Shown: positions 13,013 to 47,458 of the stretch, piece by piece
Position numbering within the stretch: the first letter of the stretch is position 1
Layout of the letters: each line of letters starts with the position of its first letter
Assembly: GCF_006345805.1 (NCBI RefSeq)
Contig: NC_043003.1
Span: 38,688,001-38,752,000, forward strand
Direction: 5' to 3'
DNA from: Octopus sinensis
Lineage: Eukaryota
DNA length: 64,000 nucleotides
Translations under genes and position numbers: made by a program
Notes under the pieces: model-generated
Seen by the model: the letters and a program-made list of their open reading frames with translations, nothing else
Databases searched by the model: none
What the model was told of the DNA's origin: nothing

Positions 13013-13218
13013 GTTGTTAATCCAAACAAGAAAACACACAAAAAAAAACACAACTCGAGGACGTGGAACAAATAAAGTATTATTGGACGCTCAGGAAAGA
13101 AGGGAAGAAGGAGGGTTTAACGTTTCGAGCGGAGCTCTTCGTCGGAAACATAGGAGAAGGAAAGATCCCGAGAAGGGAAGACAGAGGAAAAAAAATCGCC
13201 AGCGGTACTCACGAGGTA
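13013..13218 (-). mobile_element. About 200-bp PLE-pLTR-like repeat with minimal hammerhead (family 2, copy 1)
   Basis: Homologous to 25366-25560 and 26473-26672; carries the hammerhead at 13115-13149. Confidence 0.8.
13115..13149 (-). ncRNA. Minimal type I hammerhead motif, family 2
   Basis: guuu CCGACGA a gagc-ucc-gcuc GAAA cg UU^aaac (U4C lesion in this copy). Confidence 0.75.
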
Positions 13219-13329
13219 GATAGATAGATAGATAGATAGATAGTTAGATAGATCACTCTAACACATGTAGATCAATGACTAACCAACATATCTTCTGTGG
13301 CTAATATTGGACTAAGAGTCAAGATCACG

Positions 13330-13600
13330 CATATACAGCACTGCAATCGCAAGTAAACCGTGTCAACCCCTTGGCTCGCATCTTTAAAAATTCATTTTCG
13401 TTTTGCACGGTGGCGTTTGAGACGTGTGGTGGGACTGGACCATTAACTACGAAGTTCTTGCCATCGTTGGCAGCTCTCCTCATCGAGGTGTCAGGTGATG
13501 CTCTCGTGAGGGTGCTTGGCTTTTCCAACGACTTAGCCTCGCTTTCGCTCATTAGAAATACTTCGAGCGTGCTGGCTTGCTTCAGTAGGTTCCGTTGAAC
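13330..13600 (+). mobile_element. 3' fragment of an RLE-type non-LTR retrotransposon (CRE-like)
   Basis: With one frameshift it reads VAFETCGGTGPLTTKFL..LA..L..VSGDA/REGAWLFQRLSLA..RN..SVL, resembling the C-terminal restriction-like endonuclease region of CRE-type elements. Confidence 0.65.
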
Positions 13601-14708
13601 CTTGTGGTGTGCGACCAATTAAAGCACTTGGTACTGCACTGATGTTTCTCTGTCTTTCTTTCTTTCTCTCTCTCTTTCTTTCTTTCTCTCTCACTCACTC
13701 ACTCTCTTTCTCTCTCTGTATATATAAATATATATATATATATACGTATACAAACGCATAGTTTGTCCGTAGAAATGTTGGAGCACTAAATTGAAAATAA
13801 GTTCCTGTAGACAAATATACACATATATATATACACGTATGTGTGTCTATTCACACATGTGCCCGTCCGCCTGTTCATCCGTCCTGCCGTACATACATGC
13901 AGGAAGGAATAAATGAAATATTGTTTTCCAGTATCTTTATCGAAATTCTGAATTAATTTCTAGTTGTGTGCATAAAGATTTACATACTGTTAAATATCTA
14001 AAACCTATTGTTACATACAAAGGCTGAACATTACCACTGAGAGTGGTTTCTCTTTTTAAACATTCCTCTGAAAGAAATATATTATACTTTTACCAAATGG
14101 CTAACTACTTTCTTTACATGGGAAAAATATTGCCTCCCCATTAATTCAATGTGCTACACTCTAGTTAACAGTCTTAAGTTTTTGTTTTTTTTAATTTATT
14201 AAAATAATATATCAAATGTTTATAGTACAAGAGGATTAAATCTAAGGAGTTGAGAGTGACTTCCCTTTGTAAAAATATTTTAAGCACTTCTTTTCTTTAA
14301 GAAACATGTTAGATTTATGCGTGCCAAGTAACTTATGTATATGTCCGTTCCTATTGTTTTCCGAATAATTGACTATCATGAGATCCCTAAAAGTATATAT
14401 TCCATGTATTTTGAAACTGTGCCTCATATTTCATATTTGATGTGTAATTCTATTCAAATTGTCTGTTATCTCATTAGCAGTACTGTGGACAATTTTAGCT
14501 TAACTCCTTTCCTTTTACTATTATACTTATTACAATCTTTTCTTCCACTGTTTCACATATTTATTATATGTATAACATTCTTATCAATACCAATCAATTT
14601 TGAAAATTCGACAGATTATACTTCAGAGATTTATAATCTTGCACCTTTCACAATATCATATATCATATCATATCAGGTCATATGTGTATGTGTGTGTGTG
14701 TGTGTATA

Positions 14709-43139: not shown

Positions 43140-43350
43140 TAGGTTTCGGCCATTATTGGCCCAGGCCATGTCTAACTTAATAGCACCACCTGGTGAAGTC
43201 TTTCAAGTCAGAATTTGGGCACTATGGCCCACTCAAGTAGAGAGTTATTGTTTACAGAGACATATCCGGGTGTAGGGGGTTTATCCGGGATTTCTTGAAG
43301 GAATCTGTCCAAAGACTTCTTGAACCCTATAGGGTCAGTTTCTGTTTTAA
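43140..43350 (-). mobile_element. CR1/Jockey-like LINE 3' end
   Basis: [33 protein letters not shown] followed by a short 3' UTR. Confidence 0.75.
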
Positions 43351-45097
43351 TGTGTTTTTGGTGTAATGTTAAAGAGAGCGGGGCCAATTGAGGTGGAAAT
43401 ATGTGTGTGTGTGTGTATATATATATATATATATGTATATATATGTATGTATGTGTGTATGTGTATATGTATGTGTGTATGTATATATTTGTATATATAT
43501 GTGTGTATATATGTATATATATATATATATTATATATATATATATATATATATATATATATATATATCTATGTGTGTAAGTGTATTATATGTATGTATCC
43601 GTCTATATAATGGTAACTGCACGTACATATACTTAATATTTTTTTTTGAGTATGCATGTATGAATAACTGCGCGTATATATATTTTACTATTTACTTATT
43701 TTTTGAGTATGCATGTAAGTATGAATATATATATGTATATATATATATATATATATATATATATATATATATATATATATGTATATATATACATGTATGT
43801 ATTTGTATGTAGGTGTACATGTATATGTGTGTGTATTTATATTTATTGGTGTATATGTATAGACTAGCCTTCTAAGAGTGTAGACATGAATCTGTAGGTA
43901 CGCGTACGTATGTGTATATACGTGAATGTATGTAGATGTATGTATGTATGAATATAACGCGTGCGTGCGTGTATGCGTATGAGTGTACGAATGAGTGAGT
44001 GTACGTGCTAAAGAGTGTGCGTGAGTGAATGAGTGCTTGTTTTCCAGTAGACGGATAAATGGTTTGGCTGTCATAGCCAAGATGTTTGTGACCAAGCGGC
44101 CAAAGATAACAAAAGTAATAAACGAAGATAATAAAATTAAAATTAGGGAATGGGTCTGTATTTGTATATGTATATATATATGTGTGTATGTGTAGGTATG
44201 CATAGGTACACGTATGTATATATGTGTATATATATATATATGTATGTGTATATATATATGTATGTGTATGTATGTGTATGTATGTATATGTGTATGTATG
44301 TGTATGTGTGTGTGTGTATATATATATATATAATATATATATATATATATATATATATATGTGTGTATGTGTATATATGTGTATATAGGGACTAGTGTGC
44401 TGTGTGTGCATGTGTGTGTATGGATTTGTGTGTGTATGCGTGTATGTGAGTATGTGTGTGTATGTGTATATATATTTTTCTGTGTGTATATGTATGTGTG
44501 GTCGTGTGTGTATATATACATGTGTGTATACGTGTATGCAAGTGAGTGTGTGTATGTATACATATATATGTGTATGTGTAGATATGTATATGTATGTGTG
44601 AGTGTATATATATATGTGTATATATATATATATATTATATATATATATGTGTGTGTATGTATGTGTGTATGTATATGTATATATGTTTGTATGCGTGTGT
44701 ATATATGTATACATATGTGCAGAGGTATAAGTGAGAATCTCCTTATTTACCTAAAACTCTATTCCCCCCTTTATATAGATATATATATATATATATATAT
44801 ATATATATATATATATTTTTTTTTTTTTTTTTATTTTTTTTTTTTTTATTTATTTTTTTATATTCTTTATTTTATTTTTTATTTTTTATTTTTTATTTTT
44901 ATTTTTATTTTTTTTTTTTATATTTTATATTTTATTTTTTTTTTTTATTTTTTATTTTTCTCCTATCTAATTTAACACTGACTCCTTGACCACTCCCCCA
45001 AGTATGATTTTTTGCGCTATGCCTACCCCCAAAAAGTCCCCCACCAACACCCTTAAACCTGCCTAAATGTATAAATGCCTATACATTCTTGTTAACT

Positions 45098-45148
45098 AGC
45101 TTCCTGAAGATTTCTCTTGAATGAAACAGTTCTAGTCCTGTAGAAGCT
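45098..45148 (+). ncRNA. Type I hammerhead motif with full stem III, family 4
   Basis: agcuuc CUGAAGA uuuc-ucuu-gaau GAAA cag-uucuaguc-cug UA^gaagcu. Stem I is 6 perfect bp; canonical core; stem II is short and closed by U.U. Confidence 0.82.
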
Positions 45149-47458
45149 CCTTCTATATAATAAATATATATAATATATATATCTTATAGAATTGAATAAA
45201 ATAGATAACGATGAATGATAAACAAAATGAATAATAATAATAATAATAATAATAATAATAATAATAATATAATAATAATGATGATGATTTCAAATTTTGG
45301 CACAATGTCAGCAATTTTGATGGAGGAGCTAACTTGATAACATCGACCCCCATTGCTCAACTGGTACTTTATTTTTCAACCCTGAGGGCATGAAAGACAA
45401 AGTTGACCCATAGTGGAATTTGAACTCAGGACGTGTAGATGAACAAAATGTCACTATGCATTTTGGCCGGCATGCTTACAATTCTGCCAGCTTACCACCT
45501 TAATAATAATAATAATCCTTTCTACTAAAGGTATAAAGCCTGAAATTTGGTGGGAGAGGACTAATTGGTTACATCGACCCCAATGTTTTACTGGTATTTA
45601 ATTCATCGACCCTGAAAGGATGAAATGGTGTAATTTGAACTTCAAACAAAGACGGGTGAAATACCGCTAAACATTTTGCCCAGCGTGCTATTCATTCTGC
45701 CAGCCTGCTGCCTTTTTATAATAATAATAATAATTATAATAATAATAATAATAATAATAATAATAATAATAATAATAATAATGATGATGATGATGATTTC
45801 AAATTTTGGCATAAGGCCAGCAAGTTCACGGGAGTTGGTAAGTCAATTACATCGACCCCAGTGTTTAACTGGTACTTATTTTATCGACATCAAAAGAGTC
45901 GACCTCAGTGGAATTTGAACTCAGAATGTAAAGATGAATATGTTACTGAACATTTTGCCCAGCATGCTAATGATTCTGTCAGCTCTCTGCCTTAATAATA
46001 ATAATAATAATAATAATAATAATGATGATGATGATGATTTCGAATTTTCGCACAAGATCAGTAATTTCGGGGGAGGGGGTAAGTTGATTACATTGACCCC
46101 AGTTCTCAACTCGTACTTATTTCATCAAACCCCAAAAGAATGAAGACAAAGTAGACCTCAGAGGAACTTGTATTCAGAATGTAGTAATGAATGAAATACC
46201 ATTAAGCATTTCATCCAGCATGCTAGAGATTCTGCCAGCTAACTACCTTTACTTAATATAAATAATCCTTTCTACTATAGGCATAAGGCCTGGAATTTGT
46301 AGGAAGGGGGATAGTTGATTACATCAACCCCCAATACCTGACTGGTACTTAATTTATCAACTGCGAAAGGATGAAAGGCATAGTTGACCTCAGTGGAATT
46401 TGAACTTAGAATGTAGTGTCAGATGAAATACTGCTAAGCATTTCCTACAGTGTGCCAATGATTCTGCCAGCTCACCACTTGAAATATAGATAATAACTCA
46501 TATATATATATATATATATATATATAAATACATATGTATGTGTGTGTGTGTGTGTCCTGCACACTTTCTTAACAATATCACTGACTACTGACAGAAAAAC
46601 AGTCAATCTAGAAACATCTGAAGAAGTTCAAAAAAGAACTAATAATTTCTTTCACATTAGCCTCTTTTTCTCCTCCTCCACATTCTTCTTCTTCCTCCTC
46701 CTCTTCCTCCTCCACGACGACCACCACAGAAATGTGGGTTTCTGTGCTTATTCTGAATCAGAATAAACTCATACACCTTGAGTAGAAGCACTGTGACTTT
46801 GTGGTATTGGAGCATATTCTTTTATTCATTCATTGGTTTCAATTGCTGGACAATGGTCATTCTCGTATTGCCTTCAAGGAATCTTATATCAATATTATCT
46901 TTTATCAAATGTTTCAGTTATTAGACAGTCGCCATGCTGGAGTACTACCTTGATGGGTTTAGCTGAACAAGTCAATCCTAGTACTTACTTTCTAAGACTG
47001 GTATTGTCTTTCTATCGGTCTCCTTAGCTGAACCTCCAAGTTTCGGGGATGTAAACAAACTAACACACATTTGTCATGTGTTGGCAGAGGACACACACAC
47101 ACACACGATGAGCTTCTTTCAGTTTCCGTCTACCAAATCTACTGACAAGCCTTGGTTTGGCATGGAGGTATATTAATAAACACTTGTCCAAGGTACTTTC
47201 TATGCAGCGGGACTGAACTGGGAACCATGTGGTTGAAAAGCAAACTTTTTACCACACAATCACTCTTGCGCCCATATTAATATCATATGCTTTGTCTTGT
47301 ACTAATTGTTTTTATTAATTTCATAAAGAGAGGGTGGCGAAATCAGCTTGGATACAAAGGGACATAACTGTGACAGACCACAATTACACAATTTTTTTTT
47401 TTTTACTTTTGACGTTTAGTTTTTGATCACACGCCAATATACTGAACAAACGTCTTAC

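Follow-up and report, generated by a model that had tools for sequence, protein, structure and literature searches.

Four repeat families with hammerhead motifs and Penelope-type insertion anatomy in a genomic segment of Octopus sinensis

Hammerhead motifs in four repeat families

We analyzed a window of 64,000 nucleotides from the genome of Octopus sinensis (assembly GCF_006345805.1, contig NC_043003.1, positions 38,688,001 to 38,752,000), for which a system of retroelements with hammerhead ribozymes had been predicted from the sequence. The window is eukaryotic and dense in repeats, with many copies of short interspersed elements (SINEs), GT/AT microsatellites, mariner-like open reading frames (ORFs; 23.9–25.0 kb) and an intact ORF of a long interspersed element (LINE; 56.2–58.7 kb). 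All eight predicted hammerhead sites, seven said to be near-complete and one truncated, were found at their places. They belong to four repeat families, here called F1 (17.0 kb), F2 (13.1, 25.5 and 26.6 kb), F3 (39.1 and 39.4 kb) and F4 (41.8 and 45.1 kb), which as predicted showed no similarity to one another in a self-BLAST of the window. Inverted partners with outward-facing 3′ ends were confirmed for F1, F3 and F4, as were candidate target-site duplications (TSDs) of 13 bp, 12 bp and, in a sequence of low complexity, 15 bp, respectively. F1 to F4 probably represent four independent families of insertions of the Penelope type, and the 3′ part of each contains a hammerhead motif of type I or of the minimal form. 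Instead of the single hammerhead system of the original prediction, the window thus holds four independent families of transposable elements, and these differ in age, with arm identities of 98–99% in F1 and F4 versus 91% in F3.

The sites were read directly, dissected by hand and searched for with a custom hammerhead descriptor. They carry real hammerhead-type motifs in four unrelated repeat families. All invariant core bases are kept at only four of the eight sites (25.5, 26.6, 41.8 and 45.1 kb), which makes the term near-complete a generous one. Each of the others has one core alteration, namely U4→C at 13.1 kb, C3→U at 17.0 kb, G5→A at 39.1 kb and a partial deletion of the core at 39.4 kb. 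The descriptor matches have type I topology with three helices and an open helix I; in F2 and F3, helix III exists only as an intermolecular palindrome. Copies of a family (one to three per family) differ in the helices by single, non-compensatory changes, most of which are transitions. The minimum free energy (MFE) structure of F1 reproduces helices I and II, and the MFE structures of F4 reproduce the hammerhead helices. Homodimer cofolding of the minimal hammerheads was uninformative because the F2 palindrome GAGCUC dominates pairing.

Chance expectations were derived from dinucleotide shuffles of the window. Descriptors requiring a perfect core gave 0.025–0.05 matches per shuffled window compared to two independent families (F2 and F4) observed, and the reversed sequence, which served as control, gave 0 perfect-core matches. 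At family-level stringency, with thresholds set post hoc, the expectation per shuffled window was 0.007 for F1, 0.02 for F2 and 0/150 for F4. Three independent families at such rates are not a product of chance. Descriptors allowing one mismatch at minimal stringency yielded 1.2–2.0 matches per shuffled window. F3 was matched by no descriptor; what makes it credible is solely its resemblance to F2 and the anatomy of the insertion.

The missing Rfam hit, the one to two matches of one-mismatch descriptors per shuffled window and the failure of F3 with all descriptors are what speaks for the view that the motifs are chance matches, that the inverted duplicates are assembly artefacts, or both. Given the expectations for F1, F2 and F4 and the empty reversed control, we consider this view extremely unlikely. 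Moreover, the arms differ by 1.5–9% and are bounded by TSDs, whereas an artefactual palindrome would be identical and lack a TSD. The divergence of the arms (identities of 98.5% in F1, 98.4% in F4 and 91% in F3) together with the TSDs therefore argues against the inverted copies being assembly artefacts.

Some additional hammerhead-like matches were rejected as chance. One at 12531–12571(−) has GUUUCUGAUGAAG in common with F2; its core contains a mismatch, and it is located in unique sequence. The matches at 39698 and 59308 were rejected likewise.

Architecture of the insertions

The features of the four families are listed in Table 1. The hammerheads sit 23–174 nt from the 3′ ends of the elements, whose GC content ranges from 0.24 to 0.44. 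Among the hallmarks of integration by Penelope-like elements (PLEs), we found a head-to-head inverted, 5′-truncated partner (F1, F3, F4), short TSDs and microsatellite targets, with (TA)n at copies 2 and 3 of F2 and at F4. The elements also share with retrozymes, small retroelements with hammerheads, the low GC content, TSDs of 12–15 bp, i.e., of more than 4 bp, and the lack of Pfam domains in ORFs of at least 70 aa.

Table 1. Positions of the repeat elements, their hammerhead motifs and the flanking duplications in the window
Feature	Position	Strand	Remarks
F1 TSD, left copy	16845–16857		13-bp exact direct repeat TGATGTGAATAGA, flush with both insertion ends
F1 long copy, 1.38 tandem units of 355-nt monomer	16858–17348	−	3′ end at 16858
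F1 type I hammerhead motif	17026–17070	−	Descriptor match
F1 inverted 5′-truncated partner	17349–17485	+	3′ end at 17485
F1 tail, 43 nt	17443–17485	+	From coordinate arithmetic
F1 TSD, right copy	17486–17498		13 bp
F2 copy 1, ~205-nt solo element	13004–13213	−	Hammerhead at 13115–13149, U4→C
F2 copy 2	25358–25559	−	Hammerhead at 25456–25490, core intact; between (TA)n and (CA)n microsatellites
F2 copy 3	26463–26672	−	Hammerhead at 26566–26600, core and helix II intact; in (TA)n
F3 TSD candidate, left copy	39058–39069		12 bp, TAGGTTTCTTTT
F3 long copy, ~270 nt	39070–39340	−	Hammerhead-like motif at 39126–39171 and tRNA-like head at 39255–39327
F3 inverted 5′-truncated partner, 107 nt	39341–39447	+	91% identical; hammerhead remnant at 39352–39393
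F3 25-nt extension, tail candidate	39448–39472	+	Between right arm and TSD; putative element origin
F3 TSD candidate, right copy	39473–39484		12 bp
F4 TSD candidate, left copy	41665–41679		15 bp, ATATATATAATATAT, low complexity, weak evidence
F4 68-nt stretch of uncertain origin	41680–41747		Between TSD candidate and left arm; no other copy in window
F4 left arm, 3′ end outward	41748–42252	−	Hammerhead at 41765–41814, one U lost from helix II
F4 interior	42253–44659		GT/AT microsatellites and unrelated fragments
F4 right arm	44660–45165	+	Hammerhead at 45098–45148, core intact
F4 TSD candidate, right copy	45164–45178		15 bp

The F1 insertion, the clearest of the set, spans 16858–17485. Its hammerhead reads CAUGCG-uUGACGA-GAGG-CAAUUA-CCUU-GAAA-CUAUAGU-C-CGUAUG, in which the lower-case letter marks C3→U, and has a helix I of 6 bp, a helix II of 4 bp and a helix III that consists of a 2-bp stem with the palindromic loop UAUA. 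Cleavage is predicted after GUC, between 17032 and 17031. A direct repeat with 99.3% identity (16857–16992 and 17212–17347) gives a period of 355 nt. F1 is a small non-autonomous element: its 355-nt unit, with a GC content of 0.44, closes on itself without an ORF and is predicted to be highly self-paired, the monomer folding to −118 kcal/mol (z = −4.8). The original prediction had proposed a multimeric or circular RNA as template for the whole set of families. The 1.38 units of F1 point to such a template in this family; F2 with its three solo monomers and the non-tandem F3 and F4 offer no corresponding indication. F1 could reasonably be proposed as the source of a small circular RNA of ~355 nt, with which the strong predicted self-pairing of the monomer would agree.

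The inverted partner of F1 is identical at 135 of 137 bases (98.5%) to the reverse complement of 17170–17306 and joins the long copy head-to-head with a 5-nt microhomology, AAAGT. Both host junctions are 3′ ends of the element but different ones, as the right copy extends 43 nt further in the 3′ direction. These extra 43 nt are element-derived and correspond to 17170–17212 of the tandem. They match the optional tail of ~30–40 bp described for PLEs and the existence of two start sites of reverse transcription (Arkhipova et al., 2013, PMC3846280; Craig et al., 2021, PMC8557442; Frangieh et al., 2024, PMC11167929). As side observations, the sub-threshold Rfam matches 'mir-2006' and 'mir-587' at 17274–17381 correspond to the hairpin of the head-to-head junction and not to a microRNA, and a mariner-related fragment at ~16.5–16.85 kb adjoins the insertion site.

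F2 fits a ~205-nt element with a minimal hammerhead that is present in three old solo copies, two of them within microsatellites. Its motif reads GUUU-CUGAYGA-A-GAGC-UCC-GCUC-GAAA-CGU-U-AAAC, and the consensus of the three copies is a perfect minimal hammerhead: A9 is followed by a bulged base, helix I comprises 4 bp, and helix III is limited to ACGU. The 5′ and 3′ ends nearly coincide among the copies, each of which has private changes, mostly transitions. In copy 2, two transitions weaken helix II, and in copy 3 the helix III palindrome ACGU is changed to AUGU.

The hammerhead-like motif in the long copy of F3 is built like that of F2, including the bulged A and GAAACGUU. It has G5→A, an A·C mismatch in helix II, a bulged A after A9 and ACGU as helix III. 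In the inverted partner, the 5′ strand of helix I and C3/U4 are deleted; this is the motif that had been recorded as truncated. The 5′ end of the long copy is formed by a degenerate tRNA-like segment on the minus strand; its A box (TGGCGTAGTGG) agrees with the consensus, its B box (AGTTCGATTCC) deviates from it at one base, and the two are separated by 33 nt. ARAGORN called this head, which is present in a single copy, only at the relaxed threshold of 80%, and an Rfam re-scan of F3 gave no tRNA match. A 44-nt segment at 21116–21159(+) is its only other relative in the window. From its sequence, F3 is a ~270-nt element with a dead hammerhead and possibly a tRNA-derived head, and the head, seen in one copy, may be either a part of the element or an unrelated SINE fragment at the junction. 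In the former case, F3 would be a tRNA-headed SINE with a hammerhead, the design of Sm-alpha and Sj-alpha of schistosomes (PMC2770079).

The two F4 arms of ~505 bp are 98.4% identical at aligned bases and enclose 2.4 kb. Both hammerhead copies have intact cores, a helix I of 6 bp and a helix III of 4 bp; helix II is weak, with U·U at 10.1/11.1. The arrangement fits an inverted pair of pseudo-long terminal repeats (pLTRs) of a PLE, with two ~505-bp pLTR-like arms around unrelated DNA. No match to a reverse transcriptase (RT) or a GIY-YIG endonuclease was found in the interior. A piece of an ORF at ~43150–43400(−) in this interior has a C-terminal motif which we take to be typical of LINE ORF2; it had no Pfam match and is probably an unrelated LINE 3′ fragment. 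The many Rfam 'mir-297' matches at 42.5–44.7 kb are due to the GT/AT microsatellite and not to a microRNA.

Inverted structures of this kind might also derive from DNA transposons and end in long terminal inverted repeats, being either miniature inverted-repeat transposable elements (MITEs) or foldback elements, in which the hammerhead-like motifs would be incidental. F3 and F4 indeed look roughly symmetrical, and the window contains palindromic elements without a hammerhead (2831–3293 and 7367–7588). We nevertheless regard such an origin as very improbable. The termini of F1 do not match each other as inverted repeats, so that a transposon with terminal inverted repeats is ruled out for this family, and one side of F1 holds 1.38 tandem units; F3 and F4 are extended at one end only. 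The usual cut-and-paste families have TSDs shorter than the 12–15 bp found here. No transposase is associated with the insertions, the mariner ORFs at 23.9–25.0 kb being separate, and three independent hammerhead families of such quality would be unexpected by chance.

The palindrome at 2831–3293 is 463 bp long, with arms that are ~80% identical, symmetrical termini and no hammerhead motif. By eye, its tRNA-like heads face inward and its 3′ ends outward, and it could be a MITE or a symmetric head-to-head pair of SINEs. The palindromic element at 7367–7588 (222 bp) adjoins a (TA)n tract, has no hammerhead and looks MITE-like.

Coding capacity and alternative origins

Between 12 and 46.5 kb, none of the 96 ORFs that run from stop to stop over at least 70 aa contained an RVT or GIY-YIG Pfam domain, and no PLE coding remnants were found in them beside the elements. 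Their Pfam matches were mariner/Tc1-type transposase domains and a few weak unrelated ones. These include Transposase_1, HTH_48 and DDE_3, which most likely come from two adjacent mariner-like ORFs at 23929–24957(−) that represent a split gene. The statement of the original prediction that the window harbors no autonomous PLE was confirmed for this set of ORFs. Mobilization by PLEs, which it had also proposed, agrees with the insertion anatomy, as this matches published PLE integration (PMC8557442, PMC3846280, PMC11167929). It is from this anatomy that the link of F1 to F4 with PLEs is drawn, because no ORF for RT or GIY-YIG lies nearby and no copies outside the window were found in JGI metagenome contigs and IMG/VR.

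Several observations weigh against the assignment of F1 to F4 to PLE-type insertions with hammerheads. Besides the lack of RVT and GIY-YIG domains in the ORF set just described, the ORF list of the whole window has the LINE as sole RT candidate and no PLE ORF, and scans with exact patterns of the F1, F2 and F4 hammerhead cores gave 0 matches in JGI metagenome contigs and IMG/VR. In half of the hammerhead motifs the core is affected by a mutation or deletion; F3 lacks significance when taken alone, and its source lineage carries the same G5→A. Rfam detected neither a hammerhead nor a tRNA at gathering score in the whole window, at E ≤ 10 in a 33-kb region, or in re-scans of sub-windows of 111–401 nt covering F1, the 26.6-kb copy of F2, F3 and the right arm of F4. 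With respect to the anatomy, the tail candidate of F3 (25 nt) and the 68-nt extension of F4 are both outside the published 30–40 bp and of putative element origin, the TSD of F4 is of low complexity and lies in (TA)n, and the presence of hammerhead-free palindromic elements in the window means that the inverted form alone is not diagnostic. The failure of Rfam does not itself argue against a hammerhead, because minimal PLE variants escape standard searches and have been found by a custom descriptor for this reason (PMC4209133).

A related possibility is that F2, F4 and perhaps F3 are not dedicated families but remains of ordinary autonomous PLEs, either 5′-truncated 3′ ends or pLTRs, with the full-length elements residing elsewhere in the genome. 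Such truncation would be like that seen in most LINE copies, and pLTRs are frequently solo or inverted. Most dispersed minimal hammerheads were described as 'probably related to truncated PLEs' (PMC4209133), there are documented cases of solo pLTRs and of foreign DNA captured by pLTR pairs (PMC3846280), as would apply to the F4 arms with the unrelated DNA between them, and the distance of 23–174 nt between hammerhead and 3′ end is that of PLE 3′ regions (PMC8557442). This origin is inapplicable to F1 with its unit closing on itself in tandem without an ORF. The near-identical 5′ ends of the three F2 copies indicate a discrete ~205-nt unit and argue mildly against random truncation, and no remnants of RT or endonuclease adjoin any copy in the ORF set. 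On balance we consider truncated autonomous PLEs a real possibility for these families, but less likely than not. A non-autonomous nature is shown for F1 only; F2 and F4 could be pLTRs or 3′ ends of truncated autonomous elements.

The intact LINE ORF in the window and the tRNA-like head of F3 with its A and B boxes would be in line with F1 to F4 being SINE-like RNAs that were mobilized by a LINE. Twin priming is a known source of inversions and, in its L1-type form, would have to account for the inverted partners. We judge this unlikely to a high degree. The element ends have neither poly(A) nor a LINE-type microsatellite tail, and window self-BLAST gave no match of F1 to F4 to the LINE region. 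In addition, L1 twin priming results in one junction that is the RNA 3′ end, whereas here both junctions are at or near the same 3′ terminus.

The LINE itself, at 56203–58731(+), has an intact non-LTR retrotransposon ORF of 842 aa, LTR standing for long terminal repeat. Its homologues contain RT and endonuclease/exonuclease/phosphatase domains; the best relatives are 52–81% identical and stem from metagenome contigs, and distant vertebrate matches were also obtained. Judged by this intact ORF, the LINE may be active.

Comparison with known elements

Insertion by PLE machinery, the reading we prefer for F1 to F4, was compared with published systems. In PLEs, heavy 5′ truncation, partial tandems forming pLTRs, an inverted 5′-truncated copy at the 5′ end, a one-end tail of 30–40 bp, hammerheads near the 3′ end and a bias for microsatellites and (TA)n have been reported (Craig et al., 2021, PMC8557442). 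Arkhipova et al. (2013, PMC3846280) described inverted pLTRs with 8–10-bp TSDs and an optional 31-bp tail, palindromes where the copies meet head-to-head, and the capture of unrelated DNA between pLTRs. In vitro, a PLE protein cleaves and extends both strands, starting reverse transcription at two adjacent internal sites whose spacing equals the tail (Frangieh et al., 2024, PMC11167929). F1 to F4 resemble these insertions in their head-to-head 5′-truncated copies, partial tandem, junction microhomology, one-end tail, short TSDs, microsatellite targets and unrelated DNA between pLTRs. They differ from them in the length of the TSDs (12–15 bp versus 8–10 bp in rotifers) and of the F1 tail (43 nt versus ~30–40) and in having no coding part.

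Metazoan non-LTR retrozymes are tandem units of 170–400 nt with a type I hammerhead, low GC content and larger TSDs (Cervera & de la Pena, 2020, PMC7229834), and a recent preprint derives retrozymes from PLE pLTRs (Li et al., 2026, bioRxiv 10.64898/2026.07.22.740005). F1 would fit such a retrozyme that was inserted by PLE machinery. It shares with retrozymes the 6-bp helix I, 4-bp helix II and 2-bp helix III with palindromic tetraloop as well as the unit length, 355 nt being within the range of 170–400 nt and near the 350–390 nt of mussel units (PMC7229834); further common traits are the tandem, the GC content of 0.44, a TSD of more than 4 bp, the lack of an ORF and the strongly self-paired predicted RNA. 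Unlike retrozymes, which form arrays of 170–400-bp repeats each with a hammerhead, F1 has only 1.38 units with one hammerhead, an inverted partner instead of a long array, and a copy with C3→U. F2 differs from retrozymes by its dispersed, non-tandem monomers, and F3 and F4 are not tandem either.

Minimal hammerheads of PLEs lack helix III, their helix I comprises 4–5 bp, and a base preceding helix II is unpaired (Cervera & de la Pena, 2014, PMC4209133). Most of them are dispersed singly or paired on opposite strands at a distance of 100–700 bp, and their helix II comprises 7–8 bp in Schistosoma families and 6 bp in Drosophila virilis (PMC4209133). F2 and F3 would fit this type. Their helix III is reduced to the palindrome ACGU (in F1, a short palindrome, ACUAUAGU, is found as well), helix I comprises 4 bp in F2 and 5 bp in F3, and both have a bulged A 5′ of helix II. 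The motifs are likewise single and dispersed or form an opposite-strand pair a few hundred bp apart, which would imply action as dimers. Unlike the Schistosoma hammerheads, F2 and F3 have a short helix II of 4 and 5 bp, respectively, and no flanking ORF for RT and GIY-YIG that would place them in the pLTR of such an element was seen between 12 and 46.5 kb. F4 resembles HHR_Amex2 of axolotl in the U·U at the base of helix II and the more stable helix III (PMC7229834); its sequence is unrelated and it is not part of a 350-bp tandem repeat. If the head belongs to F3, this family has in common with the Sm-alpha type a tRNA-derived head and a hammerhead in a short non-autonomous retroposon, differing from it by the dead core (G5→A), by a head that is present in a single copy and may be an unrelated SINE fragment, and apparently by the phylum of the host, as the repeats look cephalopod-like.

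The classification of F1 as retrozyme-like, of F2 and F3 as minimal PLE hammerheads and of F4 as a pLTR pair thus follows traits that have already been published for PLEs and retrozymes. The inverted architecture shared by three families, which the original prediction had put forward, is the textbook structure of PLE insertions and also occurs in the window in palindromes without a hammerhead. Inverted architecture and hammerheads in PLEs and retrozymes are well documented; F1 to F4 are further examples and leave the knowledge of hammerheads and PLEs unchanged. F1 illustrates cleanly, at a single locus, the two-start-site tail signature established in vitro in 2024. For genome annotation, repeats of this kind would best be recorded as PLE-derived or retrozymes and not as MITEs or unknown, and it would be wrong to treat their palindromes as misassemblies. 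With arms 98–99% identical, F1 and F4 are young, and PLE-type mobilization may therefore be recent in this genome.

From the anatomy we infer the following sequence of events. The element would be transcribed; for F1, the transcript would derive from a tandem or be a multimer. A staggered cut might then be made by a PLE reverse transcriptase with a GIY-YIG endonuclease, presumably supplied in trans from elsewhere in the genome, and each of the two DNA ends could serve as primer for reverse transcription, which would start at one of two neighboring internal sites. The expected product would be two head-to-head 5′-truncated copies with their 3′ ends outward, a TSD of 12–15 bp and a one-sided tail. 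An intact hammerhead would cut multimeric transcripts, acting as a dimer where helix III is short and palindromic, and circular RNA might be formed.

Because the four families share only the hammerhead motif yet all carry PLE-type scars, it is conceivable, though we think it unlikely, that the hammerhead module, as a fold and not as a catalyst, is a portable cis-element that gives unrelated RNAs access to the PLE machinery. If this were so and the tRNA-like head belonged to F3, the users of such an element would include an RNA polymerase III-driven SINE with a tRNA head, and with F3 the Sm-alpha type would have arisen a second time, independently, in a different phylum.

The window also contains an abundant SINE-like repeat of ~178 bp, two copies of which (32185–32362 and 32468–32645) are arranged tail-to-tail with their (GAT)n tails inward. 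At least five further copies of this repeat are present in the window, and the pair looks like two independent insertions and not like a head-to-head architecture.

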